Shown piece by piece: positions 919-26,311 of a stretch of DNA of 28,814 bases. Below the pieces are notes generated by a model that was given only the letters and a program-made list of their open reading frames with translations, searched no databases and was not told the origin of the DNA. The position numbers and the translations under genes were made by a program. Numbering within the stretch: the first letter of the stretch is position 1; every line of letters begins with the position of its first letter. The DNA comes from Macrostomum lignano (lineage: Eukaryota). The stretch is from positions 1-28,814 of the forward strand of contig NIVC01005002.1 of NCBI GenBank assembly GCA_002269645.1. The letters are read 5' to 3'.

Positions 919-957
919 GATTCTGACCCACACGTCAGTCCCATTCCCCGCACTCAC

Positions 958-1766
958 TTGAATATTAACACCTGGCACACTGTAGGCCTTGCCAGGTGTA
1001 ATTTCCACCGGAGTGCTAATCTGTTCCTCAAAGCCTTTTATTTCTCCACCAGGCGTGTTAACCAGCAGCACTCCGAATCTGAGCTGATCTTCAGGCTTAA
1101 TATAGGCCAAGCTGGTTATGGTGAGGCCGAGCGTAGAAGCATTATAAGGCAAAGTTTCGAATACTTTAACACCTGGCGGAGTGTTGAGCAGCTGTAGTTC
1201 GTAGCGGATCGGTACGCCGTTAAAGCGATCAGGCTGCTGCCAGGTGCATCGCACCTTATTGAGCTGATTGGGCACAGGTGAACAGGCAAAGCCTCTCGGC
1301 TTGGTGGCTTTGTACGGGTCGGTTCGAATCACAATACCAGCAGATGGCGTCACTGCGGCAGTTTCCGTTGCTCCATTGAATTCCACTTTAGCTTCGATAG
1401 TAAAATGGTACCAAGTGTAGGGTAGCAGATCAGGTGCCAGGTGGGTTGCACCAGTTTCCGTTTTAGGAGTGGAGGAGTTCCGAACTACGTTGTAACTGAC
1501 ATCGCATAAGCCGTGAGTAACTGCTTTCCAGGTCAGCTTAACAGTATCATGAGTTGTTTCTATGGCGGTAACGTTGCGAACAACCACACTGGCGCTTAGA
1601 TCGCCAATTTTTGTTTTGCTGGGGACGGAAGCCTCGCTGCTGTTGTCGTAATTGTTCTCCGTGAGTAGCTTAAAGTTGTAGTTACCGCACTGAGTGAGGG
1701 GGTCGCCCGGTAGGTCTGAAGAGAGATGTTGAATGAATGCGAGGTTCTCATCTTAAACTTGAACAG
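958..1766 (-). CDS. Exon with end of one FN3 plus two FN3 domains, one frameshift near 1610; 5' boundary uncertain
   Basis: Only nearby phase-0 acceptor is GTCAG|CTG at 1767 (weak pyrimidine tract). SFNISLQTY..., LLPYTWYHFTI, WQQPDRFNGVPIRY. Donor CAA|GTGAGT at 957. Confidence 0.72.
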
Positions 1767-4700
1767 CTGACCTGACTTTCTCGCACACTCTGAGGCTTGT
1801 AGCCTAGTGGTTAGAGCGTCGGACTCACGACTTGAAGGCCGGGGGTTCGATTCCCAGTCCCACCCGAAACAATTTGTGTCCTTGAGCAAGACACTTAACT
1901 CTGAATTGCTTCAGTTCACCCAGCTGTAAACTGGGTACCAGAATTAGGCACAGATACTAGAATAACTAGATGGGCCACTCAGCACATTCGCGTATAAACT
2001 ACTTACAGATCAGTAGTAAGTTAAACAAGCATTTTCATGTATGAGCCAAGGCTCATTTTTTGGTTCTTATTGATTTATTAGCTTTAAACCATCCAACTAT
2101 CCCCCCTGCCCCAATTTTATTGCCTTTCCGGAATTCCAGCCTAAAGCAGCGATGTACATTTCAGTGGACTGGATAATGTACATTAGCTGTGGTAATTGAG
2201 GCTGTGTGTGGCGACCCCCCCCCTCCAGTCCTTGGACTGAACAGCCGAACGCAGCCTTCAGATGCGCTGTCGGTTGCACATCTGGCCCAATTGGCTCCGC
2301 CCTCACGGGTGTTTAATGCTGCTGTTCTACTCACCTCTAAAGAATAGTCAGGCAGCGAAGTCCAAAGACTTTTAACAGAGCCTGTTTCAATCCTGAACCA
2401 GTACTGCTGGAACACGCCATTCAGCATAGTAGGCGGAGTCCAGCCCAGCACAGCGAATGTGTCTCCTATTTCCTTCACATTGAGACCTTCAGGTGGATCA
2501 GGCGTGTCCGGCAGAGTTCGATCGGTGCGACTCCAAGTCTGTCCGGCCAGAGTCTGGCTGACTGGCGTCACGGACACGCTGTAGTTGGCCCAGGGCCACA
2601 GGCCAAGCAGCTTGATGGGTGCCGACGAGCTGATGTTGGAGATCTGCGAACAGCCAGAGAGCAGCTGGTTGACTGTGTCGCTAACGTTGCACTTATCCGG
2701 CGGTGACAGCTCGCAGGTCAAATTCAAGTCCGTCACGTAGCCCCCAATACAGCTTCCATTGCTGGCACTTAAGCTAACAGTGTAGGCCATGATGCGGCCT
2801 CGAGTCACGGCTGGCAGGCCGAAGTTCAGGTCAATCTGGCGCTTGTCAGGCGTCAGAACTGGCGAGCTAACTGGATCGCTCGGCTGCTCAAGTGTTCGGG
2901 CAACGGAGCTGGTGCTGCTCGGACCTGGACCGGCTCGATTCACCGGCCACACGGTGATTCGGTAGGGCGTGTACGGCTCCAGAATGTCACCAGTGTCCAC
3001 CTGCAGGTCCTGGCCGTTAGTCTGGCTGTAGCTGAAGCTCGAATTTGTCACATTTGAGCAGCCGTCCAGTTCGCTCAACGGCCCGGGGAGTTGACGTCGC
3101 GAACAGTCGGTGCACACTATTCTAGCCGCAAAAGAGCAGCTAATGGGGCTGTTGCCGCTGCTAACGTTGATCTTATCCAGCCGCAGGACGTACTCAAATA
3201 TCAGGCCTCGGCTAAACTGGAAGCTCTTCCACAGCGAGACCACGCCTTGACCGCGGCGGCTGGCAAACTGAGGCGCCTCTTCCAGTGACTTGCTCGGTGC
3301 CAGATCGTCGAGCAAAGTCAGATTAGTTTTAGGGCTGGACGGACTCTCGCCCGCCGAGGTCCACGCGGTGACGCTGCAGTCGTACTGGACTCCGGGAGAC
3401 AAATCGTTAATGGTGGCGTTAAAGGTAGTGTTAGTGCCGGCGTTAAGTGTGACGTTCTTCGGCACGGAGTTGACCCCGGAGCCGATGCCATTGGCGAAGC
3501 AGCGCACAGTGTAGGCAATGATGACACCGTTGGGCTCGGACGGAGGCGACCAAGACAGCTGCAGCCAGTCGGTACTGAAGTTGTTGGCCGAGCATCTTGC
3601 GGAGCCGTTGGGAATCCTGTAGAGTATCCTGCAGTCTCGGCGATGCCGCTGGCGACGTTCGCTCGTAATAGGCAGCGTTGACATTAAGCGAGTAGTTCGT
3701 GTGGGGCGACAGCGGCTGGAACTCGAGTTCGCAGGACTGCACCCATCGAGGGCAAGATTTATTGAATAAGACGTTGCCAGCAATATTGCTAAGTTGTGCA
3801 ATGAGCAGCTCAGAATGCGAGGTGGCCTCCAGTTTGACTTTGAGGCTTCTACTATTCACAGATGTCCAAGTCGCATTAGGCGCGCTAGGATCTGAAATTG
3901 ATTGACAATCAAATTATGAAGATAAAATGCCAGTCTTGTGAAAGGGCAGGTTTCGCAAGCCACAACTCCACAAACTTCCAACTCCACAAACTCCAACTTC
4001 ACAAACACAAATTCCACAAACCCCAACTTCACAAACCCCCATCTCTACAAACCCCAAATTCACAAACACAAATTCCACAAACCCCAACTCCACAACCCCC
4101 AACTCCACAAACCCCAAACTTCATAAACCCCCAACTCCACAAACCCCCCAACTCCACAAACATCCAACTCCACAAACCCCAACGCCACAAACCTTCAACT
4201 CCCCAAACCCCAACTCCACCAACCCCCAATTCCACAACCCCCCAACTCTCCAAACCCCAACTTCATAAACCCCCAACTCCACAAACCCCAACTCCCCAAA
4301 CCCCAACTTCACAAACCCCAACTTCACAAACACAAATTCCACAAACCCCCAACTTCACAAAGCCCAAATTCCACAAACCCCCAACTCCCCAAACCCCAAC
4401 TCCACAAACCCCCAACTCCACAAACCCCCAATTTCACAAACCCACAACTCCCCAAACCCCAACTTCACAAACACAAATTCCACAAACCCCTAACCCCCCA
4501 AACCCCTAACTCCCCAAACCCCAACTCCACAAACCCTTAACTCCCCAAACCCCAACTCCACAAACCCCCAACTCCACAAACCCCAACGCCACAAACCCCA
4601 ACTTCACAAACACAAATTCCACAAACCCCTAACTCCCCAAAGCCCAACTCCACAAACCCTTAACTTCCCAAACTCCAAAATCACAAACCCTCAATTCCAC

Positions 4701-7700
4701 AAGCCCCCAACTCCACAAAGCCCCAACTCCACAAAGCCACAATTCCACAAACCCTAACTTCACAAACCCCTGACTCCACAAACACAAAATCCACAAACCC
4801 CGAACCTCCCCAAACACCAACTTCACAAACCCCCGATTCCACAAACCCCAACTCCACAAACCCCGAATTCCACCAACCCTTAACTCTACAAACAGCAACC
4901 ATATGAGAATTCTAAAGTTCACAATCCTCAGGTTTCACAAGACTATGAACTTCAAAAGAGCCAAAACTACTGAAGAAAATAATTACTCACACAGCCTAAA
5001 AGCACCCAATACGAGTATGGCTACCCTAAACAGATTGCAAGCCCCGATTATAAATTGCACCTGCAAGCATCAGCCACTCACCTGTACGCTGTACAACCGT
5101 ATAAGTTCCGGAGCTGTTTTGCACCAAACCGTCCTTTTCGGCAACAGCCACCACTTCAATGGTTACATTATCCGAATAGGCGTATTCGCCTTTAAACTCT
5201 GCTTTCAACTTATCAAATGTCTCTTTCTTATTCATATTAAGCTTTGAAGATTTCAAATCGATGCTCAGAAAGTCTGCACCAATTGCGACGGTGCTGGTCC
5301 ACACTGCGCTCAGAGCAGAGTTTGCCAGCGTTACGGCGTCCAGCTTAAAGTCGGTGCTAAATGTTGCGCTGTTGGCGTTGAGACGGGGCTCTGAAATGTT
5401 GTGTTAAACAGGGAATGCTTCTTTTTATCAAGGACGACTTAAGTAGAAGGACGGGAAACCTCGTTTCTTGGACAATTTTCGAAAGCAGCTTTTTCTGAAA
5501 AAATACACTACAGAGATAGGAAGTTTTCATTTTTTCTGCACAAAAATTGCTATTGCTTTTGATAGAAGGCAGATCCGGTGTTCATCTTTTGATATGTTGT
5601 GCCTTTCTTATTGCTCTAGCTATCGATATTCATAAAGCTTTTCCTTTAGAAAATTAGGATTCTATGTTAATTTTTATTCATAAAAGAATCATAAAAATGC
5701 ATGGCACAGCTCCAATCTTTGCTTTTATGAATCCATTTTATCATCTATGTTACAAATATTTGTTACACAGTCAGCTAAGAAGGATAAAATAGATTCATAA
5801 AACCAAAGAGCCGAGCCGTGGCATTTTATTGGATTTCAGGCACAAGACACCTGAAAATCTACGTAGAATAAAAATCTACTATAAAACACTAGTATTTAAA
5901 ATCGCATCTTACTAGTCAGAGCCTTCGACATTGCCGGTAATGAATCCGCGAAGCCGGCCTTCTTAACAATGATATCAATACTTTGCACTGAGCCGGGGCT
6001 TAAGCCAGTTTGGTTCGTGCTAGTCTCGCTCAGCTGTTCTGTAGGGTTTGAGCCGATGGTCACTGAGTACTGCACGTTGAGACTGTTGGATGCATTCCAG
6101 CTCACGTGCACGCTCTCGTAAGTTGAACTCCAAACGATGGACGCGTTGGTTACGGGAGACAGGCCTGGGAGAAGCAGATTGCGAACAAATTAACTGATGC
6201 ATTTTATTTCAAATAAGCAAGAAATGAGGAAAATTAAACAAGATTGAGCTGCTAAACTCACGAGTCTGTCCCACTACACTGGCGGGAGAGCTGTTGTTAA
6301 AGCCAGGCTTAACCACAACAACAGTTGCTGTGTGGTTCTCTCCCGACTGCAGACCGCAGCATCTGCCTTTCAGCTCTCGGCCGACATCAATCGGAGAATT
6401 GGAGCCACAGGTCAGGTTGTATGTCACACCTGACGTATTGGAGGCTGGCCACTCTACATCAAGACAGGTCTCGTTGGAGCCCGTCACGTTGACAGAAGCC
6501 ACGGGTGACACCACTGGAACCGGGTTTCAGTTCGTTTGACAGAAAAAGTCAGTTAGAAGAGATCAAATCCTGTGTCGATAAAGCTAGAAGTGTTTTAAAA
6601 AACATAAAAAACTACTTAAAAGATTGCTACGCTACTGAAAGTAGCGAGTTAGGTCATTCCTGTCAATAGAAAACCCTAAATAAATGTTTGGAAAAAATTC
6701 CACATGTTACACGCAAGTCGGAAACCTCATAGCAATGTGGAAGAAACCGCATCACAAAAATTACCTACGAGTATGAGTAAAGGTGAATAAATGCAATGCA
6801 ATCTTGTGCACTGATTGCACTCATTGACTCTTCCCTCGAGTTTAAATTTCGATTTTTACAGTTTAATAGCAAAGCCTTTGCTGGGGTTCAAATTTGACAG
6901 TTCGAATAAAAAATGCCACGGCAGTGAGGCAAGAAACTCAGAAACATCGGGTGTGAAAACTCACGAGTCTGTCCCACTCTACTGGCGGGAGAGCTGTTGT
7001 TAAAGCCAGCCTTAACCACAACAACAGTTGCTGTGAGGTTCTCTCCTGACTGCAGACCGCAGCAGCTGCCATTCAGCTGTTTGCCGGCATCAATCGAAGA
7101 ATTGGAGCCACAGTCAAGCTCGTATGTCACATCCGATGTATTGGAGGCTGTCCAGTCTACATCAAGACAGGTCACATTGGATTTCGTCACGGTGACAGAA
7201 GCCACGGGTGACACCACTGAAACCGGGTTGCAATTCGTGTGACAAATAAGGTCAGTTAGAGCACAATAAATCGTGCGCTATTGTTGGATAGCTGTTGCAA
7301 AAAATAAAATAAAACCTTAAAAGATCACTACGCTACTGAAAGTAGTAAGTTAGGACTTTCCGGTCAATAATTAACCCCTCATAAGTGCTCTGTAAAATGA
7401 CAATAGTTACATGCACGTCGGAAGTCTCACAAAAACATCGAAGAAGCCACGTCACAAAAACTACTTATGAGTAAAGGTGAGTAAATACAATGCAGTCTTG
7501 TGCCCTAATTGCACTGCTTGAAACTTTCCTTGATTTTCAAATTCGATTTCTACAGACTAACTGCAAAGCCTTTGCTGGGTTTCAGTGCACAATTTGAATC
7601 AAACAATGCCCCGGCGCTGAGGCAAGAAACTCAGAAACATCGGCTGTGAAAACTCACGAGTCTGTCCCACTCTACTGGCGGGAGAGCTGTCGTTAAAGCC

Positions 7701-10700
7701 AGCCTTAACCACAACAACAGTTGCTGTGAGGTTCTCTCCCGACTGCAGACCGCAGCAGCTGCCATTCAGCTGTTTGCCGGCATCAATCGAGAATTGAGCC
7801 ACAGGTCAGGTTGTATGTCACACCTGACGTATTGGAGGCTGGCCACTCTACATCAAGACAGTTCACGTTGGAGCCCGTCACGGTGACAGAAGCCACGGGA
7901 GCGACCACTGGAAGCAAATCAAACAAGGTGTACAAATGTGCATTTTTCAATACAGTTATAGTTAATACTGCTCATACTTATTCACTGACTGCAGTGTCTT
8001 CAGTTCTGTATAGTAAGTTAATAACAATCTGATACAAACTGTACCAAACACTCTAAAAAGCTTTTAAGCTCCGAAAAAAGGCAAAGGCGGAGCTGTCGCT
8101 CAAGCTGCATCAGCTGCTGCAATCATTTCTGCTGCAAAATCAGAGTGATGGAAAGCAGTAAAATTTGAAAAATTGTGTTAAAGGCCACGCATCTGAAACT
8201 TAAAAAATTTCTACATTGGTGACATCACTGCAGTAAAAAGGCTTTTGTATTGGCCTTAAAGTTGCACCACATCCACAGCAATTTTTTCAACACTTTGAAA
8301 ATTGAATTACAAGCCTGCGTCAGATCAGCTATTAAGCATGGGTGAACTCGCTACCTGGCAAAAACTGTCGTCAACTTACATTCTGCTTTGCGGAGGAATT
8401 TACGAGTAATTTATACAAAAAATCAAAGCCGTCAGTCAAAGCTCAGCCCCGTCAATCAACATCCCTAAAAGCCGCAAAGCATCACAGTCGAATTAAAGGC
8501 CTGCGTCAGTTGAGCAATTAAGCATCAAGCACTCTGATTTGCAGAGGAATTTAATTCAGAAAAATCAAACTTCAGCCCTGTCAGTCAACATCCTAAAAGC
8601 CGCAAAGCATCACAGCAACAAAGCCATCTGACTCAGAGCAGCTCATCTGAGCACACAGAGCTGCTGAACTCACGAGTCTGTCCCACTTACTGGCGGGAGA
8701 GCTGTGTTAAAGCCAGGCTTAACCACAACAACAGTTGCTGTGTGGTTCTCTCCTGACTGCAGACCGCAGCAGGAGCCTGAGGTTCCTGAGTCCACTTTAA
8801 TTGCACCTGACCCACAGTCAAGCTCGTATGTCACACCCGATGTATTGGAGGCTGGCCACTCTACATCAAGACAGGTCACGTTGGAGTTCTTTACGGTAAC
8901 AGAAGCCACGGGTGACACCACTGAAACCGGGTTTCAGTTCGTGTGACAAAGAAGGTCAGTTAGAGGAGCTCAAATCCGGTGTCGATAAGGGCTTGTAGTT
9001 TCCAAAAATTAAAAAATTACTTAAAAGATCGCTAAACCAATGAAAGTAGTGACATTAGGACATTCATGCAATAATACAACCTTCTGTGGAACGACAGTAA
9101 CTTCAAAGTAACATCATTTAATTTAGGTCACAAAAAGTACGTATAAAAAACGTGACTGAATGCAGTGCACGCTTGTGCCTCTACTGCACTCGTTGAACTT
9201 TTGTTTGAGTTTAAATAATCTCGATTTCTACAGACAAATTCAAAAGCATTTGCTGGGTTCGCAGTGCACAATTCGAATAGAAAATATCACCGCAACGTTA
9301 CTGTTGCGCTCTGGATTGATTCAATTTATTAGATATCAGAGCAAAACTGTTCATTCAATGAGTCATGTCGTGAATGAAATCACGTTGCACTACCACAAAA
9401 TTCTCCTCCCTAAGGTAAACTGTTGCACCGGAGTTGGCCTGAGCAGTTGCAGCTGGCGTCAGTGCGGTGAGAGCGTGCTGGCTGGTCCTGTAGTAGGTCT
9501 TGAACACCAAGTCGATGGCGTCCTCGAAGGCTCGAACTTCACTCCCGCCCTTAAGTTCGACTCAGCGGTTGCCCTTTGAGTAACACTGGCTAGCTCGGCT
9601 GTGTCGGATGCCCTCCGCTTGCAGGAAGTCCTCGAACTCTTCGCTGACGAACTGGGGCCCGTTGTCGCCGATCAGCATTTTTGGCACACCGCATCGACCG
9701 AATAGTTTCTGTAGCGCTTTGATAATGTTGGCAGAGGCCACTGTCTCCATGGCTGCAGTCTTCGGTCACTTGCTGTAGAGATCGTGGATCCCCAGTAGGA
9801 ATCGCTGATGTCGAGGAGCTGCGGCGACCTCGCCGAAGATTTCGATCTCGACCTTTGTCCCACGGTCCATCTGGCCACTCGACTGGTGCCACGGTTGTCT
9901 GGTGCGGCTTGCCGGTCTTCTCCGCGAGGTTGCAGGCCGTGCAGTTCTTGACGTGGTCCTCTACGTGCTGAGCAATCCCAGGAAACCAGACCGTGTCGAC
10001 GCACTGACTGATGCTCCAACAGAAGAGCTTCTCGCGGATGTTGTACTACGGCCGAAGAGTACCAGTACTGCTTACCTCGGTCGGCCAGCCGTCAGCGATG
10101 TGTCGTAGAACCGGCTGCAATTCTTCGTCATTCCTGGTTGCAGTCGCTAGCTTATCGTCCATTTGCGTTGTATTCAAGTCGAAAATTGCGTAGAGGTAGC
10201 TCTCCTCATCTGTCTCGACTGAAACGCGTTCGGTCGTGGCCCATTTGTACAGCATGTCTGCGCACTGGTTCTCAGCGTCAATGCTTCTCGCTCGCCGCTG
10301 AGTATCTCTTTTCCGCTAGACTCAGAGCTCTTGACGCGAACACGATTGGCACCTCTTGTCCATTTCATCTCTTTGCTTCTTGCTAAGCGCCTTTATGTGG
10401 AGCTCTGAGCTGCTAAACTGCTTGGCGTCCCTGCATGATGGCTGCTTCGATTCGCTCGACCTTCTTAATGGCGTCGTCAAGCGTCAGACTATGTCCCAAA
10501 TCAGCAGTCTTTTCGTGATGCGAGGTTCGCATGTTTTCTTCACGAGTTGGTCCCGTATCATCACACGGTGGAAGTTGCCAAAGTTGCAGTTTGTTGCCAG
10601 TTCTCTCAAGGCCATCATGTTGTCTCCGATGCTCTCGCCGTCATGCTGGGCTCGCAGCCGAAAGACGAAGCGCTCTGCTATGACGCTTCTCGACGAGTTG

Positions 10701-13700
10701 AAAATCCCCTTCAGTGCCTTTTTGGCCAACTGAAGCGACTTGCTTGCATCGACGTTTGCAGCTCGTCGGCGTCCTTCCTCACTGAGTAGATGCAGGGGGA
10801 TCGCCTTTTTCCGACACTCTGATGCCCCTTCAAGATTTCCAGCTACCAGAAAGTTCTCAAATGACTTGATCCACCTTGCCCATGGCACAAGAGGTTTACC
10901 TGGTTGAAACTCCACTGGGTATGGGAGTCCGCTCATCGCTATTCGTTGTGCTTTGGATTGATTCAATTAGTAAGATATCGTAGCAAAAATTTTATCTCTA
11001 CTCTAACTATACCCAAAAATTTACAACATGGGTCATGCCGTGAATGAAACCCAGTTGCACTGCCAAAATCAATGCAAGAATTTTAGAAAGATTAGGATCA
11101 GAAAACTCACGAGTCTGTGCCATTGTACTGGTGGAAGAGCTGTCGTTAAAGCCAGGCTTAACCACAACAACAGTTGCTGTGAGGTTCTCTCCCGACTGCA
11201 GACCGCAGCAGCTGCCATTCAGCTGTTTGCCGGCATCAATCGGAGAATTGGAGCCACAGGTCAGGTTGTATGTCACACCTGACGTATTGGAGGCTGGCCA
11301 CTCTACATCAAGACAGTTCACGTTGGAGCCCGTCACGGTGACAGAAGCCACGGGAGCGACCACTGGAAGCAAATCAAACAAGGTGTACAAATGTGCATTT
11401 TTAGATACAGTTATAGTTAATACAGCTCATACTTATTCACTGACTGCAGTGTCTTCAGTTCTGGTATAGTAAGTTAATAACAATCTGATACAAACTGTAC
11501 CAAACACCTCTACAAAAGCTGTAAGCTCCGAAAAAAGGCAAAGGCGGAGCTGTCGCTCAAGCTGCATCAGCTGCTGCAATCATTTCTGCTGCAAAATCAG
11601 AGTGATGGAAAGCAGTAAAATTAGAAAATTTGTGTTAAAGGCCACGCATCTGAAACTTAAAAAATTTCTACATTGGTGACATCACTGCAGTAAAAAGGCT
11701 TTTGTATTGGCCTTAAAGTTGCACCACATCCACAGCAATTTTTTCAACACTTTGAAAATTGAATTACAAGCCTGCGTCAGATCAGCTATTAAGCATGGGT
11801 GAACTCGCTACCTGGCAAAAACTGTCGTCAACTTACATTCTGCTTTGCGGAGGAATTTACGAGTAATTTATACAAAAAATCAAAGCCATCAGTCAAAGCT
11901 CAGCCCCGTCAATCAACATCCCTAAAAGCCGCAAAGCATCACAGTCGAATTAAAGGCCTGCGTCAGTTGAGCAATTAAGCATCAAGCACTCTGATTTGCA
12001 GAGGAATTTAATTCAGAAAAATCAAACTTCAGCCCTGTCAGTCAACATCCCTAAAAGCCGCAAAGCATCACGGCAACAAAGCCATCTGACTCAGAGCAGC
12101 TCATCTGAGCACACAGAGCTGCTGAACTCACGAGTCTGTCCCACTTTACTGGCGGGAGAGCTGTTGCTAAAGCCAGGCTTAACCACAACAACAGTTGCTG
12201 TGTGGTTCTCTCCTGACTGCAGACCGCAGCAGGAGCCTGAGGTTCCTGAGTCCACTTTAATTGCACCTGACCCACAGTCAAGCTCGTATGTCACACCCGA
12301 TGTATTGGAGGCTGGCCACTCTACATCAAGACAGGTCACGTTGGAGTTCTTCACGGTGACAGAAGCCACAGGTGACACCACTAAAACCGGGTTTCAGTTC
12401 GTGTGACAAAGAAGGTCAGTTAGAGCACAATAAATCGTGCGCTATTGTTGGATAGCTGTTGCAAAAAAACCTTAAAAGATCACTACGCTACTGAAAGTAG
12501 TAAGTTAGGACTTTCCGGTCAATAATTAAACCCTCATAAGTGCTCTGTAAAATGACAATAGATACATGCACGTCGGAAGCCTTACAAAAACATCGAAGAA
12601 GCCACGTCACAAAAACTACTTATGAGTAAACGTGAGTGAATACAATGCACTCTTGTGCCCTAATTGCACTGCTTGAAACTTTCCTTGATTTTCAAATTCG
12701 ATTTCTACAGACTAACTGCAAAGCCTTTGCTGGGTTTCAGTGCACAATTTGAATCAAACAATGCCCCGGCGCTGAGGCAAGAAACTCAGAAACATCGGCT
12801 GTGAAAACTCACGAGTCTGTCCCACTATACTGGCGGGAGAGCTGTCGTTAAAGCCAGCCTTAACCACAACAACAGTTGCTGTGAGGTTCTCTCCTGACTG
12901 CAGACCGCAGCAGCTGCCATTCAGCTGTTTGCCGGCATCAATCGAAGAATTGGAGCCACAGTCAAGCTCGTATGTCACATCCGATGTATTGGAGGCTGTC
13001 CAGTCTACATCAAGACAGGTCACATTGGATTTCGTCACGGTGACAGAAGCCACGGGTGACACCACTGAAACCGGGTTGCAATTCGTGTGACAAATAAGGT
13101 CAGTTAGAGCACAATAAATCGTGTGCCATTGTTGGATAGCTGTTGCAAAAAATAAAATAAAAACTTAAAAGATCACTACGCTACTGAAAGTAGTAAGTTA
13201 GGACTTTCCGGTCAATAATTAACCCCTCATAAGTGCTCTGTAAAATGACAATAGATACATGCACGTCGGAAGCCTCACAAAAACATCGAAGAAGCCACGT
13301 CACAAAAACTACTTATGAGTAAACGTGAGTGAATACAATGCACTCTTGTGCCCTAATTGCACTGCTTGAAACTTTCCTTGATTTTCAAATTCGATTTCTA
13401 CAGACTAACTGCAAAGCCTTTGCTGGGTTTCAGTGCACAATTTGAATCAAACAATGCCCCGGCGCTGAGGCAAGAAACTCAGAAACATCGGCTGTGAAAA
13501 CTCACGAGTCTGTCCCACTCTACTGGCGGGAGAGCTGTCGTTAAAGCCAGCCTTAACCACAACAACAGTTGCTGTGAGGTTCTCTCCCGACTGCAGACCG
13601 CAGCAGCTGCCATTCAGCTGTTTGCCGGCATCAATCGGAGAATTGGAGCCACAGGTCAGGTTGTATGTCACACCTGACGTATTGGAGGCTGGCCACTCTA

Positions 13701-16700
13701 CATCAAGACAGTTCACGTTGGAGCCCGTCACGGTGACAGAAGCCACGGGAGCGACCACTGGAAGCAAATCAAACAAGGTGTACAAATGTGCATTTTTAAT
13801 ACAGATAGTTAATACAGCTCATACTTATTCACTGACTGCAGTGTCTTCAGTTCTGGTATAGTAAGTTAATAACAATCTGATACAAACTGTACCAAACACC
13901 TCTACAAAAGCTGTAAGCTCCGAAAAAAGGCAAAGGCGGAGCTGTCGCTCAAGCTGCATCAGCTGCTGCAATCATTTCTGCTGCAAAATCAGAGTGATGG
14001 AAAGCAGTAAAATTAGAAAATTTGTGTTAAAGGCCACGCATCTGAAACTTAAAAAATTTCTACATTGGTGACATCACTGCAGTAAAAAGGCTTTTGTATT
14101 GGCCTTAAAGTTGCACCACATCCACAGCAATTTTTTCAACACTTTGAAAATTGAATTACAAGCCTGCGTCAGATCAGCTATTAAGCATGGGTGAACTCGC
14201 TACCTGGCAAAAACTGTCGTCAACTTACATACTGCTTAGCGGAGGAATTTACGAGTAATTTATACAAAAAATCAAAGCCATCAGTCAAAGCTCAGCCCCG
14301 TCAATCAACATCCCTAAAAGCCGCAAAGCATCACAGTCGAATTAAAGGCCTGCGTCAGTTGAGCAATTAAGCATCAAGCACTCTGATTTGCAGAGGAATT
14401 TAATTCAGAAAAATCAAACTTCAGCCCTGTCAGTCAACATCCTTAAAAGCCGCAAAGCATCACAGCAACAAAGCCATCTGACTCAGAGCAGCTCATCTGA
14501 GCACACAGAGCTGCTGAACTCACGAGTCTGTCCCACTTTACTGGCGGGAGAGCTGTTGCTAAAGCCAGGCTTAACCACAACAACAGTTGCTGTGTGGTTC
14601 TCTCCTGACTGCAGACCGCAGCAGGAGCCTGAGGTTCCTGAGTCCACTTTAATTGCACCTGACCCACAGTCAAGCTCGTATGTCACACCCGATGTATTGG
14701 AGGCTGGCCACTCTACATCAAGACAGTTCACGTTGGAGCCCGTCACTGTGACAGAAGCCACAGGTGACACCACTGAAACCGGGTTGCAATTCGTGTGACA
14801 AATAAGGTCAGTTAGAGCACAATAAATCGTGTGCCATTGTTGGATAGCTGTTGCAAAAAATAAAATAAAAACTTAAAAGATCACTACGCTACTGAAAGTA
14901 GTAAGTTAGGACTTTCCGGTCAATAATTAACCCCTCATAAGTGCTCTGTAAAATGACAATAGATACATGCACGTCGGAAGCCTCACAAAAACATCGAAGA
15001 AGCCACGTCACAAAAACTACTTATGAGTAAACGTGAGTGAATACAATGCACTCTTGTGCCCTAATTGCACTGCTTGAAACTTTCCTTGATTTTCAAATTC
15101 GATTTCTACAGACTAACTGCAAAGCCTTTGCTGGGTTTCAGTGCACAATTTGAATCAAACAATGCCCCGGCGCTGAGGCAAGAAACTCAGAAACATCGGC
15201 TGTGAAAACTCACGAGTCTGTCCCACTCTACTGGCGGGAGAGCTGTTGTTAAAGCCAGGCTTAACCACAACAACAGTTGCTGTGAGGTTCTCTCCCGACT
15301 GCAGACCGCAGCAGCTGCCATTCAGCTGTTTGCCGGCATCAATCGGAGAATTGGAGCCACAGGTCAGGTTGTATGTCACACCTGACGTATTGGAGGCTGG
15401 CCACTCTACATCAAGACAGTTCACGTTGGAGCCCGTCACGGTGACAGAAGCCACGGGAGCGACCACTGGAAGCAAATCAAACAAGGTGTACAAATGCATG
15501 CATTTTTAAATACAGCGATAGTTAATACTGCTCATACTTATTCACTGACTGCAGTGTCTTCAGTTTCGGTATAGTAGTTAATATCTGTCTGATACAAACT
15601 GTAGAAAGGTGTAAACATACAGTCATTCCGAATGCAGCAGCAATCTTATACAGACAGTCTGTACATCTTACGCTCCTTAGTAATCAGAATTACCACCTGC
15701 TATCTTCGTCGTCATCATTTCGTCTTACTAAAAATATATTAAACTGCAGTAAATAAAACCTTGCTATCAAACTGTTTAAGCATTTGATGATGAAGGAAGG
15801 TAAACACACTGAAGTTTCCATTTGCAGCTAGTAGCTGCTTTAAAAAAGCACCCTTACTGCACAAGAAGAACTGCGCAAATTCACAGTTTCTAAATTTCTC
15901 AGGAAATTCCGAACAAAATTACATGTATAAGCTTCGATAGTTTTAAGTAGCAAAACCTTGCATAGTTGCTAACACAAAATCCAAGTGGAGCAAAGTTGTT
16001 GATGACTCGATACACAGCGTTCTTCATAAACTTTGATTTAACGAATTGCAAACATTTATCGTATCCCCTGCATTCATTGCCTCTGACCGGATAGGCATTT
16101 CAAGTGTGCTTTAGTGTGTGACAGTGTCTGCTTTAGTGTGTCACAGTGTCTGCTTTAGTGTGTCACAGTGTCTGCTTTAGTGTGTCACAGTGTCTGCTTT
16201 AGTGTGCCACAGTGTCTGCTTTAGTGTGTCACAGTGTCTGCTTTAGTGTGTCACAATGTCTGCTTTAGTGTGCCACAGTGTCTGCTTTAGTGTGTCACAG
16301 TGTCTGCTTTAGTGTGTCACAGTGTCTGCTTTCGTGTGTCACAGTGTCTGTTTTAGTGTGTCACAGTGTCTGTTTTAGTGTGTCACAGTGTCTGTTTTAG
16401 TGTGTCACAGTGTCTGTTTTAGTGTGTCACAGTGTCTGTTTTAGTGTGTCACAGTGTCTGCTTTAGTGTGTCAGTGTCTGCTTTAGTGCGTCAGTGTCTG
16501 TCTTAGTGTGTCACAGTGTCTGTCTTAGTGTGTCACAGTGTCTGTCTTAGTGTGTCACAGTGTCTGTCTTAGTGTGTCACAGTGTCTGTCTTAGTGTGTC
16601 TTTGCGTTTCTCTTAGTGAGCCGTTCTGTTTTAACACATCTGTCATAGGAAGACATTTGCTCAAAAATGGGGTTGCTGAGTTTCAAAAGCTCCAAGAGAA

Positions 16701-17214
16701 AAGGTGTCTGAGATTACAAAAGTCAAGAGCCAACTACAATTGATGTCAGCGCTGTTTCCAAGTGTTTGACCCAGAAGCTTCACTCACGAGTTTTGCCTGT
16801 GGCGCTGCTGGGCGGGCTGTCCAGATGTCCTGGAGCTTGTGCTACGACTGTCACGCTGTGCTCTGCGCCGGAGCTCAAACCGGTACAGGTGTAGCTGCTG
16901 GCGGTGATGTTGCATTCAAGAGGCTTTCCCGAGCAGTTGACACAGTATGAGGCGCCTGCTCCTGACACAGGCGTCCATGAAAAATACACCGAATCTACCG
17001 TGGCTCTTGCCGCATCCGATTTGAGATCGGTCACCGACGGTAGAGTTGGAGTTGGAGTTGGAGTTGGAGTTGTCGGAGCTTCCGTAGGCGCCTCCGTAGT
17101 TGTCGCTGGTGCGTCGGTTGTCGATGCTTTCGTCAACTGCAGGACCGGCAAACTGCAGACTGTCAACAGAAGCAGCACTGCTGACGCCCGCGAACTACTA
17201 GCAGGAGTTGGCAT
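958..17214 (-). CDS. Multi-exon gene (5' part) encoding a signal-peptide protein with ~20 FN3 domains; R3-type receptor tyrosine phosphatase-like or adhesion-receptor ectodomain, 3' end outside window
   Basis: 14 exons assembled by hand with GT/AG boundaries and compatible phases. FN3 signatures include W.PP...NG.I..Y and L.P.T.Y.(I/V).V. The PTP-like identity is inference only, because no TM or PTP domain is visible. Four apparent frameshifted spots (~1610, ~3616, ~7790, ~8690-8705). Confidence 0.88.
1793..2025 (+). mobile_element. tRNA-derived SINE with CORE/Meta-like central domain; 3' end approximate
   Basis: A box TAGCCTAGTGG 1800-1810 and B box GGTTCGATTCC 1844-1854, with broken acceptor and T stems. 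Followed by GTGTCCTTGAGCAAGACACTTAAC...CACCCAGCTGTAAACTGGGTACC (1876-1939), which resembles conserved metazoan SINE cores (from memory). Confidence 0.8.
2335..3891 (-). CDS. Large exon with ~4.5 FN3 domains, one frameshift near 3616
   Basis: TTTCAG|AT at 3892. Frame of ORF 3443-3859 switches to frame of ORF 2161-3801 at LQ/IPNGS. WSPPSEPNGVIIAY, LEPYTPYRITVWPVNRAGPG, WTPPTMLNGVFQQY. Donor GAG|GTGAGT at 2334, phase 0. Confidence 0.82.
3961..4898. repeat. Intronic degenerate 15-16-bp satellite (CCCCAACTCCACAAAC)n
   Basis: Direct inspection; almost G-free on the + strand. Confidence 0.95.
5082..5390 (-). CDS. Exon, 309 nt, divergent FN3-like domain
   Basis: TTTCAG|AG at 5391 and ACAG|GTGAGT at 5081; open frame, phase 1-1; LSAVW...YAYSDNVTIEVVAV. 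Confidence 0.8.
5913..6164 (-). CDS. Unique FN3 exon, 252 nt, distant paralogue of the cassettes
   Basis: CTCCCAG|GC ... ACTA|GTAAGA, phase 1-1; LSPVTNASIVWSSTYESVHVSWNAS...GLSPGSVQSIDIIVKKAGF. Confidence 0.85.
6262..6513 (-). CDS. FN3 cassette exon 10 (divergent type D), 252 nt
   Basis: TTCCAG|TG ... CTC|GTGAGT; TGSNETCLDVEW...IDVGRELKGRCC. Confidence 0.9.
6965..7216 (-). CDS. FN3 cassette exon 9 (type C), 252 nt
   Basis: TTTCAG|TG ... CTC|GTGAGT; open frame. Confidence 0.9.
7658..7907 (-). CDS. FN3 cassette exon 8 (type A), 250 nt, two 1-nt deletions
   Basis: Splice sites intact. gg to g at ~7789 and ~7796 relative to the paralogues. Pseudo-exon or sequencing error. Confidence 0.75.
8674..8920 (-). 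CDS. FN3 cassette exon 7 (type B), 247 nt, two 1-nt deletions
   Basis: Splice sites intact. Deletions at ~8688 (ttt to tt) and ~8705 (tt to t) relative to the paralogues. Pseudo-exon or sequencing error. Confidence 0.75.
9302..11067 (-). mobile_element. Degenerate, internally deleted Gypsy/Ty3 LTR retrotransposon (Mag-like) with very short LTRs
   Basis: 3' LTR 9302-9397 (TGT...CAACA, AATAAA at 9325-9330) preceded by PPT AGGGAGGAGAA (9401-9411). Diverged 5' LTR 10944-11067 followed by PBS-like TAGCGATGAG. gag remnant (WARWIKSFENFLVA...KKAIPLHLL), DEELQPVLRHIADGWP linker, integrase remnant (DNGPQFVSEEF...GIRH). No RT recognised; no TSD seen. Confidence 0.88.
11111..11362 (-). CDS. FN3 cassette exon 6 (type A, divergent 3' end), 252 nt
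   Basis: TTCCAG|TG ... CTC|GTGAGT; ends SSSTSTMAQT instead of SSPASRVGQT. Confidence 0.88.
12132..12380 (-). CDS. FN3 cassette exon 5 (type B), 249 nt
   Basis: TTTTAG|TG ... CTC|GTGAGT; VTVKNSNVTCLDVEW...YELDCGSGAIKVDSGTSGSCC. Confidence 0.9.
12813..13064 (-). CDS. FN3 cassette exon 4 (type C), 252 nt
   Basis: TTTCAG|TG ... CTC|GTGAGT; VTVTKSNVTCLDVDWTASNTSDVTYELDCGSNSSIDAGKQLNGSCC. Confidence 0.9.
13506..13757 (-). CDS. FN3 cassette exon 3 (type A), 252 nt
   Basis: TTCCAG|TG ... CTC|GTGAGT; open frame, phase 1-1. Confidence 0.9.
14524..14772 (-). CDS. FN3 cassette exon 2 (type B body with A-like 5' end), 249 nt
   Basis: TTTCAG|TG ... CTC|GTGAGT; VSPVASVTVTGSNVNCLD...YELDCGSGAIKVDSGTSGSCC...KVGQT. 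Confidence 0.9.
15214..15465 (-). CDS. FN3 cassette exon 1 (type A), 252 nt
   Basis: Acceptor TTCCAG|TG, donor CTC|GTGAGT, phase 1-1; VAPVASVTVTGSNVNCLDVEW...YNLTCGSNSPIDAGKQLNGSCC...RVGQT. Confidence 0.9.
16103..16600. repeat. Intron-1 22-bp satellite (CTGYYTTAGTGTGTCACAGTGT)n, ~22 copies
   Basis: Direct inspection; variant blocks GCTTT, GTTTT (x5, from 16348) and GTCTT (x5, from 16498). Confidence 0.95.
16788..17214 (-). CDS. Exon 1: signal peptide, Thr/Pro/Ala stalk, first FN3
   Basis: ATG at 17214 (MPTPASSSRASAVLLLLTVCSLPVLQLTKA), then STTDAPATTTEAPTEAPTTPTPTPTPT, then FN3 (VYFSW...GLSSGAEHSVTV). Donor ACTC|GTGAGT at 16787, phase 1. Confidence 0.88.
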
Positions 17215-18837: not shown

Positions 18838-19400
18838 GAGGGGCGCACTGAAGGGTGAGGGGCACTCTGAAGAGTGAGGGGCACTCTGAAGGGTGAGGGG
18901 CACTCTGAAGGGTGAGGAGAACTCTGAAGGGTGAGAGGCACTCTCAATGGACTCTGAAGGGTGAGGGGCACTCTCAATGGACTCCGAAGGGTGAGAGGCA
19001 CTCTCAATGGATTCTGAAGGGTGAGGGGCACTCCAATGGACTCCGAAGGGTGAGAGGCACTCTCAATGGATTCTGAAGGGTGAGGGGCACTCCCAATGGA
19101 CTCCGAAGGGTGAGAGGCACTCTCAATGGATTCTGAAGGGTGAGGGGCACTCTCAATGGACTCTGAAGGGTGAAAGGGCACTCTGATGGATTCTGAAGGG
19201 TGAGGGGCACTTTGACGGGACTCTGAAGGGTGAGGGGCACTCTGAAAAGCGAGGGGCACTCTGAAGAATGAGAGGCACTCTGAAGGGCAAGGGGCACTCG
19301 GAAGGGACGCTGAAGGGCGAGGGGAATTCTGAAGATTGAGGGGCACTCTGAAGGGCAAGAGGCACTCTGAAGGGTGAGGGACACTCCTGTAGGGTGAGGT
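18838..19400. repeat. Composite satellite: 19-bp (GGGGCACTCTGAAGGGTGA) flanks around ~10 copies of a derived 30-bp unit
   Basis: Measured period of 19 at 18861-18900 and 30 at 18941-19001. Confidence 0.93.
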
Positions 19401-21689
19401 AGAAAGTACAAGGCACTCTAGGAAAGGTTTCAAAGTTTAATTGTGAAACAGGCAATAGAGTTTTTAAGATTGCATATTGATCAGTTTAAGATAACATTCC
19501 CAGAATCATAGCTAATGAAATATTTGATATGAATTTATATAGAAAAAACTCTGTTATTTTTTCAAGTATATTATATAACGATTATATAGTTTCAATGCCA
19601 GAGCATTAATAGCAACAAATTTATATAAGATATCAAACTAAAACAGAAATTTCTTTATAATTTGGAATATTTTATATTAATCTATAAGTTTAATACTGGC
19701 TATACTTTGCAGCATAAATTGTTTATATATCAAATTAAATACCTATAGTTTGTAGTCTTAAAAATTAGTCATATCAAAAAATGTAAAAAATATTGTAGAA
19801 ATGTTAAAAATTAAGTATAACTCTTTGTAAAAATATAATTTTAAAATGCATGCTTAATCTTAATTTATATTGAAAAGACAATAAAAAGACTGGCAATGGT
19901 CATCGCCTAAAAATATTTATAGTTTATTAATTTTACAAAAAGTAGGTTGAACAGAGCATGTCTACGATGAATAGTATCTTTTAAAAGCCATACAGGTATC
20001 GCAATAAGAGCTTTCAGCTACAGAAAAAAAGAAAAATGCAGTAAACGCAACTGTTTTACACACTTCCTTTAAATTTAAGTCGTAAGTGTTGATTGAATTG
20101 GACTTATCTAAGAAAATAACCTTTTTGAAATTCCTCGATGAAGCTTCAAAAAACAAACAACAAAACATGTATTTTGTATTATTTTAGTTAATTTTTGCAC
20201 ATGCATGAAATAATTTCACATTTATTCAGCAGATGTTTTAGCAAAATACGCGCGAATTTATTCTCCTTTATTTTTATTTTCATCTTAAAATTGTTAAATG
20301 CAGCTATAAACGATGGCGGAATTAGCGCGCGCAGAGAAAACGTACCTCTCGTTTGACTGTAGTAGTTTAGTGTTTAAAATTCTTCGATGTTCCTGCATGG
20401 AACTCAACTTTCTCGTTGCCTGATTCGCGGGGTTGGAGTGGGTGTTTTGGGCGAGTAAACTGATTCATGGGGTTCTTCGTGTCATTCTTGTTGAGAATTA
20501 CATGTAGACCGAAAGCTTCAATTACATGTAGACCGCGGGCTTGAGTGCTGAAATTAATTACTGAGCAACCTGACCATTCACTCCTTCAGATCAAGGTAGC
20601 TAAGATGTTGGCGAGCAGCTGGATTCAGCTACAGAGAGTACAAAAAATTAAGAGAGACAATTACAGGGAGGATTGCGATAGTGTGTACGTACATGTACTG
20701 TAAATTGCTAACCCGGTAAAGCTGTAATTGGGAATGCAGGAACGCATTGCAGACTGAGAGGACTTCTGCAGGGTTTTTTACTCTGGCAAAGTCTACTGTA
20801 CAGTGCTGTTTTATACTAGTACACTTATTTAATTTTTATAAAAAATATAGTACATCGTACATGTACATTATATTATAATGTACACGTAGCTTTTAGCAAT
20901 AAAATGGACGATGACCTGAAGTCTAGGGTATTTTCTAACGACTGGAAATGAACACAAAACGCTATCATGCATAGATTGCAAGACAAGCCCGGATGACTGC
21001 AGACTATGACTCCGATATAGATGTACATCTACATGTAACAGCAGCTCAGGTCCCATAAAAATCATGTTTTATTCACTAAGTGCGCCGAACGCGATCCCGG
21101 TGAACCCTAGATATCCAGGCTCTTCTCCCGATGACTCATCAGATGACTCATTCCTGCATCCACCCCACTCCTTCCCCCACTTTATCCTTCGCGATACTTT
21201 GTTAAAAAAATCACTGAAATGGAACCCAATGGAACGGCAATTCAAGGTATTGCACATAACGAGCCACGAGCATGGGACATGAATTCATTACGTGCTATTT
21301 GAGCAGCGCGTTTTTACCACCTTTGTGGCAGCCCGGCTCTTCCCCTTCCCCTTACGCGCCGAGCGCGGCTCTTATTCGACTTGTTCGGCTCTTGGGTAAC
21401 TTTCCGGAACCTAGCTTCCGCACCTTCATCTTAGACGAGCCACCACTTCCCTAGGGTCACCACACCACAGAGTTTATCCACGAGTTTAAGTCAACCTGCG
21501 AGATCGCCATTTAATCCTCCCTTTGATCCTCGTCGAATCCCTGATTCCCTATCCCTGATTGATTGAACCGAATTTTTTAGAGGCAGGGGGCTGTGTGCAC
21601 CCTGGTGCACAAGCGACGCAAGGACTACTAAAGTAGAATTGACGGAAGCGACGCACGGGGGCACGAGGAGACTGGCGCAACTCGAGCAT

Positions 21690-21724
21690 GCGCTGGTTCG
21701 CTGGTTCGCTGGTTCGCTGGTTCG
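21690..21724. repeat. (GCTGGTTC)x4 at the 5' junction of the RTE element
   Basis: Direct inspection. Confidence 0.9.
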
Positions 21725-23179
21725 CTGCGACACCAACTGCGACACCATGGCTCCACAGGCTCTCCGATCAGACTATCGGCTTCTGCTCTGCGACTTGCGG
21801 CTCCACGACCAGCTCTACCGACCGCCAAAGCAGCGGCCACGGCGCTACTATCACGCTCTGTCGGGCGCCCACGTGAAGCGTCAATTCTCAGGCGCTTTCG
21901 TCGGCGTGTTTGGAGATCAGCGCGAGGCGGAGTATTCCGACATCAGAACCGCCGTTAGAGCTGCTGCGGCTCCGCTGTGTAGCCTCCCAGGTCACAGGCG
22001 TCATGAACCTCATGCTCGCTGGCACCCCCGCGCCCACCGAGTGGACGGTTGTGCACATCGTGCCGATCCCGAAGAAGGCAGAGACAACGCGGAAAGAAGA
22101 CCACCGCGGGATCTTGCTGATGTCCTGCACCGCGAAGCTCTTCAACCGGCTGCTGCTCGATCGTCTGCAGTCGGTACTGGACCCGTACCTGCGATACGAG
22201 TAGAACAGATTCCGGCCACAACGCGGTACAGTGACCCAGATCCTCGCACTCCGCCGTGTCATCGAGGAGGCGCGCATCCACCAGTCTACGCTGATCATTG
22301 TCTGTCTTCGTTGACTTTCGAAAGGCGTTTGACTCGGTGTTGAGAGCCGCGCTTCCCTTTGTCCTTCGAGCCTTCCGGGTACCCCAGCAGCTAATCGACG
22401 CTGTCATGGCGCTCAAGCTGCTGTGACAGCGTCGATGACAGCTGTGACAGCTGCTGTGATGACGGCGGACGGCCTGTCTGACCTCTTTGACACTTCATCA
22501 GGAGTTCTGCAGGGCAACACGCTGGCGCCATTCCTCTTTGTGCTGCTGCTGGACTGAGTGCTTCGGACCGCACTCCCCTCGGCTGACGACGGCTTCCTGC
22601 TGCGCATACGTATCGGTCGCCCCCAATGCCTGAGCGTGCTGTCCTTGTCCGTTGAAGGCGCCCAACGCCAGATCGACAGGCTGGTCGAGGGTGGCATCGA
22701 GCGTCGGTCTCGTTGTCAACATGTAGAAGACCGAGGTGCTGACTGTGCCGGCCGAAATCCCAGCGGAACTGACGTGTCGCGGCGCAGACGGGCAGACGAC
22801 CAGGCTCGCACGCTGCCAGCGGTTCACCCACCTCCGCGGTCTGGTGCCCCACGTGGAAGAGGACCTCCGGCGGCGCAGAGGACTTGTCTGGGCGGCCTTC
22901 CATTCGATCCGGGCCGTCGTCCAGTCCAAAGCGCTGCCCGACCGCCAGAGTTTCGGCTGTGGCAGGCGGTGATGGAAACCGTCCTGCTCTACAACGCCGA
23001 GACATGGAGGCTGACGGCTGCGCTGGAGCGGCAGTTGGACTCGGTGCACTCAGTGCGACCTTTCGAGCTGACGAGAGCGTCGGGATCGAGTCCCTGTACG
23101 ATCGGGCCAAGCTGCAGCGCCCGTCCATCATCCTGCGCAGGCGACGACTTCAACTGGCGGGCCACGTGATCCGGGCCGG

Positions 23180-23182
<3 letters not shown>
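21725..23182 (+). mobile_element. Decayed RTE-like non-LTR retrotransposon (APE C-terminus plus RT), truncated at both ends
   Basis: LRSDYRLLLCD (APE end), IVPIPKK..HRGILLMSCTAKLFNRLLL.RL, FVDFRKAFDSV, GVLQGNTLAPFLF, ETVLLYNAETW, LRRRRLQLAGHVIR. Stops, frameshifts, YADD segment missing. Confidence 0.9.

Positions 23183-23236
<54 letters not shown>
23183..23236. repeat. (CT)27 microsatellite
   Basis: Counted directly. Confidence 0.98.
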
Positions 23237-23239
<3 letters not shown>

Positions 23240-26012: not shown

Positions 26013-26311
26013 CAGGGGCGTCGCCACCGGCATCGCCATCGCCGCCCAGTAAAAACTATGGGGGACAAGCCTTTTGCTTTAGGGTGCCAAAATGAGTGAC
26101 TGCGGCATCAAAATGAGTGACTGCGGCATCAAAATGAGTGACTGCGGCACCAAAATGAGTGACTGCGGAACCAAAATGAGTGACTGCGGAACCAAAATGA
26201 GTGACTACGGCACCAAAATGAGTGCCAACAACACAGATTCTCAAAATACAAGTACATGTAGAATTCTTGGCTTTGTCCCCCCCACCATAAAAACACATGG
26301 CGAAGCCCCTG
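26013..26311. mobile_element. MITE-like element with imperfect terminal inverted repeats
   Basis: CAGGGGCGTCGCCA (26013-26026) versus the reverse complement of 26298-26311, CAGGGGCTTCGCCA (13/14). Subterminal TATGG..GGGGACAA(A)GC is also inverted. No TSD found. Confidence 0.65.
26088..26224. repeat. 21-bp minisatellite (CAAAATGAGTGACTGCGGCAC), 6 copies plus a partial one, inside the MITE
   Basis: Direct inspection. Confidence 0.95.

Follow-up and report, generated by a model that had tools for sequence, protein, structure and literature searches.

The locus and its source

The window analyzed here is the whole of a 28,814-bp scaffold (NIVC01005002.1) of the Mlig_3_7 assembly of the flatworm Macrostomum lignano. 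On its minus strand it harbors the upstream part of a gene in which ten closely similar exons, referred to here as cassettes e1 to e10 in the order of the gene, lie in tandem behind the first coding exon. The GenBank model for the scaffold is PAA46194.1 (BOX15_Mlig023446g1, partial). Each cassette encodes a single module that is predicted to be a fibronectin type III (FN3) domain. In this account we deal with the structure and age of the array, with the kind of protein to which it belongs and with the way in which its exons are likely to be spliced. Literature searches returned no account of the present gene, and none of a mutually exclusive array of FN3 exons.

Anatomy of the exon array

The minus strand has 11 occurrences of the donor sequence CTC/GTGAGT, in which the slash marks the splice junction: one closes exon 1, at 16788, and the others close the ten cassettes. 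Each cassette has a single AG acceptor 247-252 nucleotides (nt) upstream of its donor, followed by TG, in the pattern (c/t)ag/TG. All ten read in phase 1-1, and the module that they encode is ~83-84 residues long. A first-pass annotation of this DNA had described ten cassette exons with this phase and these splice signals, set between exon 1 and unique downstream exons; all lie at the positions that it gave, on the minus strand. Six cassettes are 252 nt in length (e1, e3, e4, e6, e9 and e10) and two are 249 nt (e2 and e5), whereas e7 measures 247 nt and e8 250 nt. The features of the gene, all on the minus strand, are as follows; the letters A to D denote the cassette types described below.

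16788..17214, minus strand: coding part of exon 1, with the ATG at 17214, a signal peptide, a Thr/Pro-rich linker and one FN3 domain; ends in phase 1 at the donor CTC/GTGAGT
15466..16787, minus strand: intron 1 (1322 nt), with a 22-nt minisatellite of 22.6 copies at 16107-16600
15214..15465, minus strand: e1, type A, 252 nt, intact
14524..14772, minus strand: e2, type B, 249 nt, intact
13506..13757, minus strand: e3, type A, 252 nt, intact
12813..13064, minus strand: e4, type C, 252 nt, intact
12132..12380, minus strand: e5, type B, 249 nt, intact
11111..11362, minus strand: e6, variant of type A ending in ...STMAQT, 252 nt, intact
8921..11110, minus strand: long intron i6 (2190 nt), which splits the array and holds a degenerate retroelement fragment
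8674..8920, minus strand: e7, type B, 247 nt, frame broken by two separate 1-nt deletions
7658..7907, minus strand: e8, type A, 250 nt, equal to e3 but for two 1-nt deletions in CC runs
6965..7216, minus strand: e9, type C, 252 nt, intact
6262..6513, minus strand: e10, type D, 252 nt, intact, followed by a 97-nt intron; 100% match to the proteins P0001 and P0063
5913..6164, minus strand: unique, diverged FN3 exon, 252 nt, phase 1-1, acceptor cag/GC, donor A/gtaaga
5083..5397, minus strand: following coding exon, limits approximate, from tblastn matches
2287..3895, minus strand: large coding stretch with several FN3 domains (fn3 E=1e-22), limits approximate, with a frameshift near 3611
949..1701, minus strand: further FN3-coding stretch, limits approximate, after which the gene leaves the scaffold before its transmembrane and phosphatase parts

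The product of exon 1 is identical to the N-terminus of PAA46194.1, and its FN3 domain is matched by Pfam fn3 under the family cut-off (E=4.6e-4). The introns inside the array range from 432 to 769 nt, apart from the one of 2190 nt, and all are of the GT-AG type with the same donor. Over its last ~100 nt, intron 1 shares homology with the 3' end of the 766-nt introns that lie between cassettes. Polypyrimidine tract content is 0.73 for the A exons against 0.45-0.55 for the B, C and D exons, with e10 having the weakest tract. Within i6, the remnant of an integrase core is found on the gene strand at 9562-9750 (PF00665 rve, E=8.7e-8), and a 160-residue open reading frame (ORF) lies at 10484-10966.

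The cassettes as FN3 coding exons

Direct Pfam matches of the cassettes are weak, with the family Fn3_Dep-1_3rd at E=0.007, under its cut-off. The cassettes are, in addition, 40-42% identical to residues ~316-383 of an M. lignano paralog (P0003), a region that is itself a significant Pfam fn3 match. Through these links of sequence the cassettes are predicted to be FN3 domains. The downstream coding stretches give significant Pfam fn3 matches and point to an FN3-repeat ectodomain, within which the 5083-5397 stretch returned no match in the Pfam search. Word-indexed protein searches gave matches limited to M. lignano, in the form of fragments ending at the array edges. An exhaustive profile search collected 59 relatives, of which three are close, the others being FN3 proteins of a generic kind with several bacterial ones among them; a profile search of the PDB sequences with the cassettes gave nothing significant.

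Every cassette carries four conserved cysteines and 3-7 N-glycosylation sequons. Variation among the cassettes is centered on alignment columns ~100-152, in agreement with the central concentration noted in the first-pass annotation. Outside this central segment, types A and B differ at a proportion of nonsynonymous sites (pN) of 0.028 and of synonymous sites (pS) of 0.14. Since pN in these flanks is well below pS, the B-type exons are under purifying selection, and they are true coding exons. That they are dead pseudo-exons was considered and rejected, as they are intact in both of the loci described here and show this low flank pN relative to type A. Between A and B, the central 20 codons have reached saturation for synonymous and nonsynonymous changes alike (pS 0.75, pN 0.45), which suggests that the central segment is old or mosaic and has been kept distinct while the flanks stay alike; it carries no clean signal of positive selection.

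Repeat structure and age

The ten cassettes fall into four types: A (e1, e3, e6 and e8), B (e2, e5 and e7), C (e4 and e9) and D (e10). The first-pass annotation had counted nine distinct sequences, a number that holds given that e8 equals e3 apart from indels; they group, however, in these four types. Exon identity within types is 99-100% among e1, e3 and e8, 97.6% for e6, 96-98% for type B and 99.2% between e4 and e9. The introns follow suit. Copies of a 441-nt intron type (i1, i3, i4 and i8) are 97.5-100% identical to one another, and those of a 766-nt type (i2, i5 and i7) 99.0-99.5%, whereas between types the introns are 72-81% and the exons 88-94% identical. When e1 and its intron are compared with e3 and its intron, only 2 mismatches are found in 693 nt. 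As the repeat family extends into the introns, chance is no issue for the array.

The order of the cassettes is A-B, A-C-B, A-(2190-nt intron)-B, A-C-D. It is reflected in repeat spacings of 1708 nt, corresponding to an A-B unit, and of 2392 nt, corresponding to an A-C-B unit. The array is thus a set of very young tandem duplicates arranged in a higher-order repeat, and its near-identical exon-plus-intron units stand one behind the other, each in frame, as those of an in-series coding repeat do.

A second locus and the gene family

A search for paralogous loci, which had been proposed in the first-pass annotation, uncovered a second copy of the array on a 910-kb contig, NIVC01000130.1 (L001), which encodes PAA89945.1 (P0064). 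At the protein level it matches the window exactly over exon 1 and the first six cassettes, one 1-nt frameshift apart, and it also has the long intron i6, at 10014-12203 and of equal size. Beyond the first six cassettes its 3' part is different, in the order B', A', B', relic, B', A', so that L001 has 11 cassettes and a 3' relic as opposed to 10 cassettes in the window. One of its cassettes measures 251 nt. The relic (14860-14895) is what is left of a cassette of A/C type, namely its final ~20 codons, VVVVKAGFNDSSPASRVGQT, and keeps the CTC/GTGAGT donor intact without an acceptor or 5' part; it is the trace of an unequal exchange within the array. Copy number and cassette order therefore differ between the window and L001, two assembled loci of the same inbred line. 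The two may be alleles, homeologs or assembly variants.

Between ~17750 and ~9260 there is essentially no difference between the window and L001, most 500-nt bins having 0 substitutions, and further downstream the identity drops to ~94%, giving a mosaic pattern. Substitutions relative to L001 are clustered in a few 500-nt bins (14252-13758, 11757-11260 and 9259-8760), with 9-12 per bin as against 0 elsewhere, and all of these substitution-rich bins sit in repeated intron or exon copies. Such clustering could arise from gene conversion between repeats or from mis-polishing. Among the M. lignano protein models at least three differing versions of exon 1 and the first cassette are found (P0005, P0006 and P0066), and several paralogous or homeologous copies of the phosphatase gene must therefore be present. 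Multiple gene copies are consistent with the duplicated genome of M. lignano.

In the L001 gene, which is ~94-99% identical to that of the window, further FN3 domains are followed by a transmembrane segment (IGGIVGGVLGALLVVAIVVLLI) and then by one Y_phosphatase domain (E=3e-69) that carries VHCSAGVGRTG. The closeness of this protein tyrosine phosphatase (PTP) domain to the R3 class of receptor-type PTPs (RPTPs) was judged by score ranking among single-domain PDB chains, in which the best scores were those of PTPRJ (184 bits), VE-PTP (183.7), PTPRH (179) and PTPRO (175.6), with PTPRB (about 164-165) and Ptp10D (160 bits) lower. Given the transmembrane segment and a PTP domain that scores best against R3 members, the gene family is that of the R3-type RPTPs, and by way of its paralog the window gene is assigned to the same class. 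In R3 RPTPs the FN3 domains are mostly encoded by single exons between phase-1 introns, and FN3 number differs among sequences (PMC5336234). Single FN3 exons flanked by phase-1 introns are exactly what is found in the window, and the exon architecture of the array is thus the norm of the family.

The array as a probable stalk extension

The array is probably a copy-number-variable, glycan-rich extension of the FN3 stalk at the membrane-distal, N-terminal end of an R3 RPTP, spliced mainly in series and brought about by unequal crossing-over. The starting point would have been three or four diverged domain exons of older origin (types A, C, B and D). The higher-order unit, introns included, would then have multiplied in steps of 2392 nt (A-C-B) and 1708 nt (A-B), presumably through unequal crossing-over between the near-identical introns. 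With phase 1-1 and a length that is a multiple of three, every extra copy would add one FN3 module of ~84 residues. Most cassettes would be spliced in series, as the FN3 exons of other R3 phosphatases appear to be, and the outcome would be a longer, glycan-rich ectodomain stalk whose length tracks gene copy number and may influence function. A constitutive, copy-number-variable stalk extension of a receptor was one of two possibilities raised in the first-pass annotation, and it fits both a gene that encodes a receptor and loci with 10 and 11 cassettes. Near-identical FN3 repeats in series are also found in distant M. lignano paralogs (P0003 and P0014).

A number of observations weigh against this interpretation. 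The transmembrane and PTP parts lie outside the window and are deduced from a paralog that is ~94% identical. AlphaFold2, run on an alignment of eight cassettes, gave seven strands in FN3 order at a predicted local distance difference test (pLDDT) score of 61, and a Foldseek comparison of this cassette model with the PDB found no match at E<=0.001; the FN3 fold therefore rests on the sequence links described above. None of the database protein models holds a B- or C-type cassette, and the word-indexed searches gave no transcript-derived protein that spans them. The youngest copies show 14 nonsynonymous against 1 synonymous changes, a trend toward relaxed or diversifying evolution that is not significant (binomial estimate, p about 0.07). 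The GenBank models of the two loci, finally, clash with the simple inclusion of all cassettes.

The first of these models, PAA46194.1, consists of exon 1, one cassette and the 5913-6164 exon. Its cassette is chimeric, the 5' half being A-type (e1) and the 3' half e10, with the join falling in an 81-nt stretch common to e1 and e10 and not at splice sites. It therefore reflects repeat collapse, either in short-read assembly or in BLAT mapping, and no splice isoform. The model also ends in the wrong frame following a frameshift. The second, PAA89945.1 from L001 (cassettes p1 to p11), starts at the first Met beyond the frameshifted p4, that of the closing residues MAQT of p6. From there it proceeds by canonical splice sites to p8, to p11 and to the unique exon, so that it comprises two full cassettes and the tail of a third, and it omits the intact B-type p7, p9 and p10. 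The underlying annotation drew on short reads, for which up to 1000 multi-mappings were allowed, on StringTie/TACO at an isoform fraction of 0.75 and on BLAT-mapped de novo contigs, and is unreliable in repeats that are 98-100% identical. The omission of the B-type cassettes could accordingly reflect either real skipping or an annotation artefact.

Frame breaks and the quality of the assembly

The first-pass annotation had recorded two exons as 2 nt short. Their lengths of 247 and 250 nt bear this out, although in each the shortfall is made up of two separate 1-nt deletions and not of one 2-nt deletion: CC to C twice in e8, and AA to A and AAA to AA in e7. A comparison of e7 and its intron with e5 and its intron reveals seven single-base indels, and the twin pair of e2 and e5 shows two indel events, one of 2 nt. 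A further frameshift is found at ~3580-3640 on the minus strand, where two 1-nt deletions relative to L001 (TTCCCC to TTCCC and CTCAGG to CTCGG) lie 32 nt apart; these deletions near 3611 explain the overlapping ORFs 3443-3859 and 2161-3801. The coding exons of the window thus contain six single-base deletions, two each in e7, in e8 and near 3611.

The M. lignano assembly was made from PacBio reads with Canu and polished with short reads, and it is highly redundant, with 180 Mb in duplicated blocks at >=95% identity (PMC5730564). Short-read polishing would be expected to work poorly in near-identical repeats. Because the frame breaks are all single-base deletions, several of them in short homopolymers, they look like uncorrected long-read errors, and for e7 and e8 residual errors of the long-read consensus are the most likely cause. 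Decay of a redundant copy is a possible cause in their place. If the breaks in e7, e8 and near 3611 were genuine, splicing all the exons in series would cut the protein short, making this copy a pseudogene or one that depends on exon skipping, which adds to the points against a stalk built in series.

A broader version of this concern is that the scaffold as a whole is a degraded or mis-assembled redundant copy, be it a haplotig, a chimera or a pseudogene, in which case the number and order of cassettes and the frameshifts would not be those of the functional gene. The mosaic identity to L001, the six coding deletions, the termination of the scaffold within the gene and the duplicated blocks of the assembly all speak for it. 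Against it, eight of the ten cassettes are intact, and an array that shares its first six cassettes and its retroelement intron with this one stands on an independent 910-kb contig, from which it follows that the array itself is real. We regard a degraded or mis-assembled copy as possible but doubtful.

Possible optional use of cassettes

Combinatorial skipping of the kind known from tenascin-C and from the EDA and EDB exons of fibronectin would make the cassettes individually optional, with isoforms that differ in length and in loops. The reading frame would survive any subset, as the first-pass annotation had correctly pointed out, the intact cassettes being multiples of three in phase 1-1. 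The canonical joining of the end of p6 to p8 and of p8 to p11 in PAA89945.1, past intact B-type cassettes, would fit such a mode, and the junction between a MAQT end and an A start is impossible by in-order splicing of L001. The weaker polypyrimidine tracts of the B, C and D exons point the same way. However, the evidence for skipping comes from that same annotation, and the MAQT-end/A-start junction may stem from an unassembled paralog, as there are at least three or four variants of exon 1 (P0005, P0006 and P0066). The B-type exons are, moreover, intact with flanks under purifying selection, and e10, despite having the weakest tract, is present in all models.

Combinatorial skipping is, on balance, unlikely. 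Transcripts might nonetheless take varied subsets, for instance without the B modules, giving ectodomains of varying length, glycan load and C'-E loop region, though we give this a low probability. If it were true, the optional cassettes would represent a tenascin-like and, in the extreme, Dscam-like layer of diversity on top of germline copy-number variation.

Mutually exclusive splicing as a proposed mode

The first-pass annotation had also proposed a Dscam-like diversified receptor, and in a Dscam1-like scheme exactly one of the ten cassettes would enter each transcript to yield a repertoire of receptor tips. The cassettes are indeed homologous exons in tandem between constant exons, equal in length and phase and identical in their splice sites. 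Variation is mostly confined to one loop region, and the GenBank model of the window shows one cassette only. That single cassette, however, is the chimera joined away from splice sites. The cassette-to-cassette junctions in PAA89945.1, for example ...MAQT/LVAPVAS..., argue against mutual exclusivity.

Of four known means of enforcing exclusivity, three are excluded here. Steric constraint by very short introns is excluded by array introns of 432-769 nt (plus the one of 2190 nt, with 97 nt after e10), incompatibility between U2 and U12 spliceosomes by the fact that all introns are GT-AG with the same donor, and frame disruption followed by mRNA decay by intact cassettes that are whole domains of 3n length.

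In Dscam1, mutually exclusive splicing proceeds through pairing between docking sites and selector sequences, and competing structures can arise from duplications (PMC6071210). Such structures could evolve at the present array; none is detectable. In a local complementarity scan that tolerated GU pairs, five regions were tried as candidate docks against five intron types: intron 1 in three parts, i10, and the intron that follows the 5913-6164 exon. The scan used 40 dinucleotide shuffles per pair and covered ungapped, local pairing. For most pairs the score did not exceed the shuffle mean, and the regions scanned (intron 1, the last intron of the array and the following intron) yielded no shared docking site with matching selectors. 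Three isolated pairs beat nearly all shuffles (0-1 of 40 reach the observed score), at differing sites, and therefore share no dock. In intron 1 the exception to shuffle-level complementarity is a lone match of 21 nt, to i9. Scanning the locus for inverted repeats turned up nothing beyond weak matches of 14-22 nt, 82-93% complementary. RNAduplex applied to whole introns gave full-length pseudo-duplexes no better than shuffles, which is uninformative. The 22-nt minisatellite of intron 1 was considered as a docking array and rejected, as its best complement among the inter-cassette introns scores lower than the shuffle mean; its 17-nt, 82% match lies in exon e2 alone.

There are, in addition, only four cassette types, and the 98-100% identity of the introns leaves no time for selectors to have evolved. 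With the exon architecture being that of R3 phosphatases in general, Dscam-style diversification is not supported and strict mutual exclusivity is highly improbable; some skipping of cassettes is conceivable, at low odds.

Other features of the scaffold

A GC-rich block at ~21600-25400 on the minus strand (58-62% GC) holds frame-broken ORFs of a retrotransposon without long terminal repeats (non-LTR). Positions 24313-24864 give an endonuclease-like match (Exo_endo_phos_2, E=4e-5, under cut-off), and the ORF at 23128-24174 is reverse transcriptase-like by eye, without a match in the Pfam search. Minisatellites are unusually dense, at 68-925, 3956-4893, 16107-16600, 18838-19399, 26087-26224, 26705-27734 and 28178-28814, with periods of 14-31 nt and 6-76 copies. 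Two are in introns of the phosphatase gene, and one reaches the end of the scaffold. An ORF of 515 residues (40-1587) reads through the 20-nt repeat at 68-925, a stretch that the paralog protein omits.

Significance

The locus represents a clear and very young case of amplification of a domain exon, by what appears to be unequal crossing-over, in a receptor phosphatase. It also illustrates how short-read annotation fails in such repeats, having produced one chimeric single-cassette model and one truncated, exon-skipping model. If stalk length varies between copies or individuals, this flatworm, which is capable of transgenesis, could offer a natural setting for testing whether ectodomain function depends on size. 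A new class of receptor diversification would be at hand only if cassette choice were regulated.

Comparison with known systems

Among the R3 RPTPs, the set compared comprises PTPRB/VE-PTP, PTPRJ/DEP-1, PTPRH, PTPRO and PTPRQ, Ptp10D and Ptp4E of Drosophila, and DEP-1 of C. elegans. The present gene would share with them an ectodomain of multiple FN3 domains, variable in number, and, as seen in the paralog, a single transmembrane segment and a single PTP domain. It differs in that its distal repeats are extremely young, with exons 88-100% identical, near-identical introns and a higher-order repeat, and in that their number differs between two assembled copies in one genome. Unlike in many R3 members, a C-terminal YxN motif is not evident in the tail of the paralog as read by eye.

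The kringle IV-2 (KIV-2) array of LPA, like the SRCR repeats of DMBT1, is a copy-number-variable set of coding repeats spliced in series. In LPA, too, near-identical exon-plus-intron units stand in tandem with one in-frame module per unit, and unequal recombination alters their number, on which the size of the protein depends. The differences are that the module here is FN3, the protein a receptor phosphatase and the organism another one, and that the difference in copy number is known from two assembled loci only (10 versus 11).

Alternatively spliced FN3 cassettes are found in tenascin-C (A1-D) and in fibronectin (EDA and EDB). These are likewise single-domain, phase 1-1 exons that keep the frame on skipping, a behavior that the omission of B-type cassettes in the paralog model would fit, whereas the cassettes of the present array are far more alike and their alternative use is a candidate mode. 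If the cassettes are optional, splicing of the tenascin-C and fibronectin kind, and not that of Dscam1, would by analogy be the closest counterpart.

With clusters 4, 6 and 9 of Dscam1 the array has in common tandem homologous exons of equal size between the constant exons of a cell-surface receptor. In Dscam1, however, the exons encode immunoglobulin half-domains or whole domains and are selected through docking-site pairing, whereas here they encode FN3 modules, no such pairing was detected, and very young duplicates of four types, with no means of enforced exclusivity, are found joined to one another in the paralog model.

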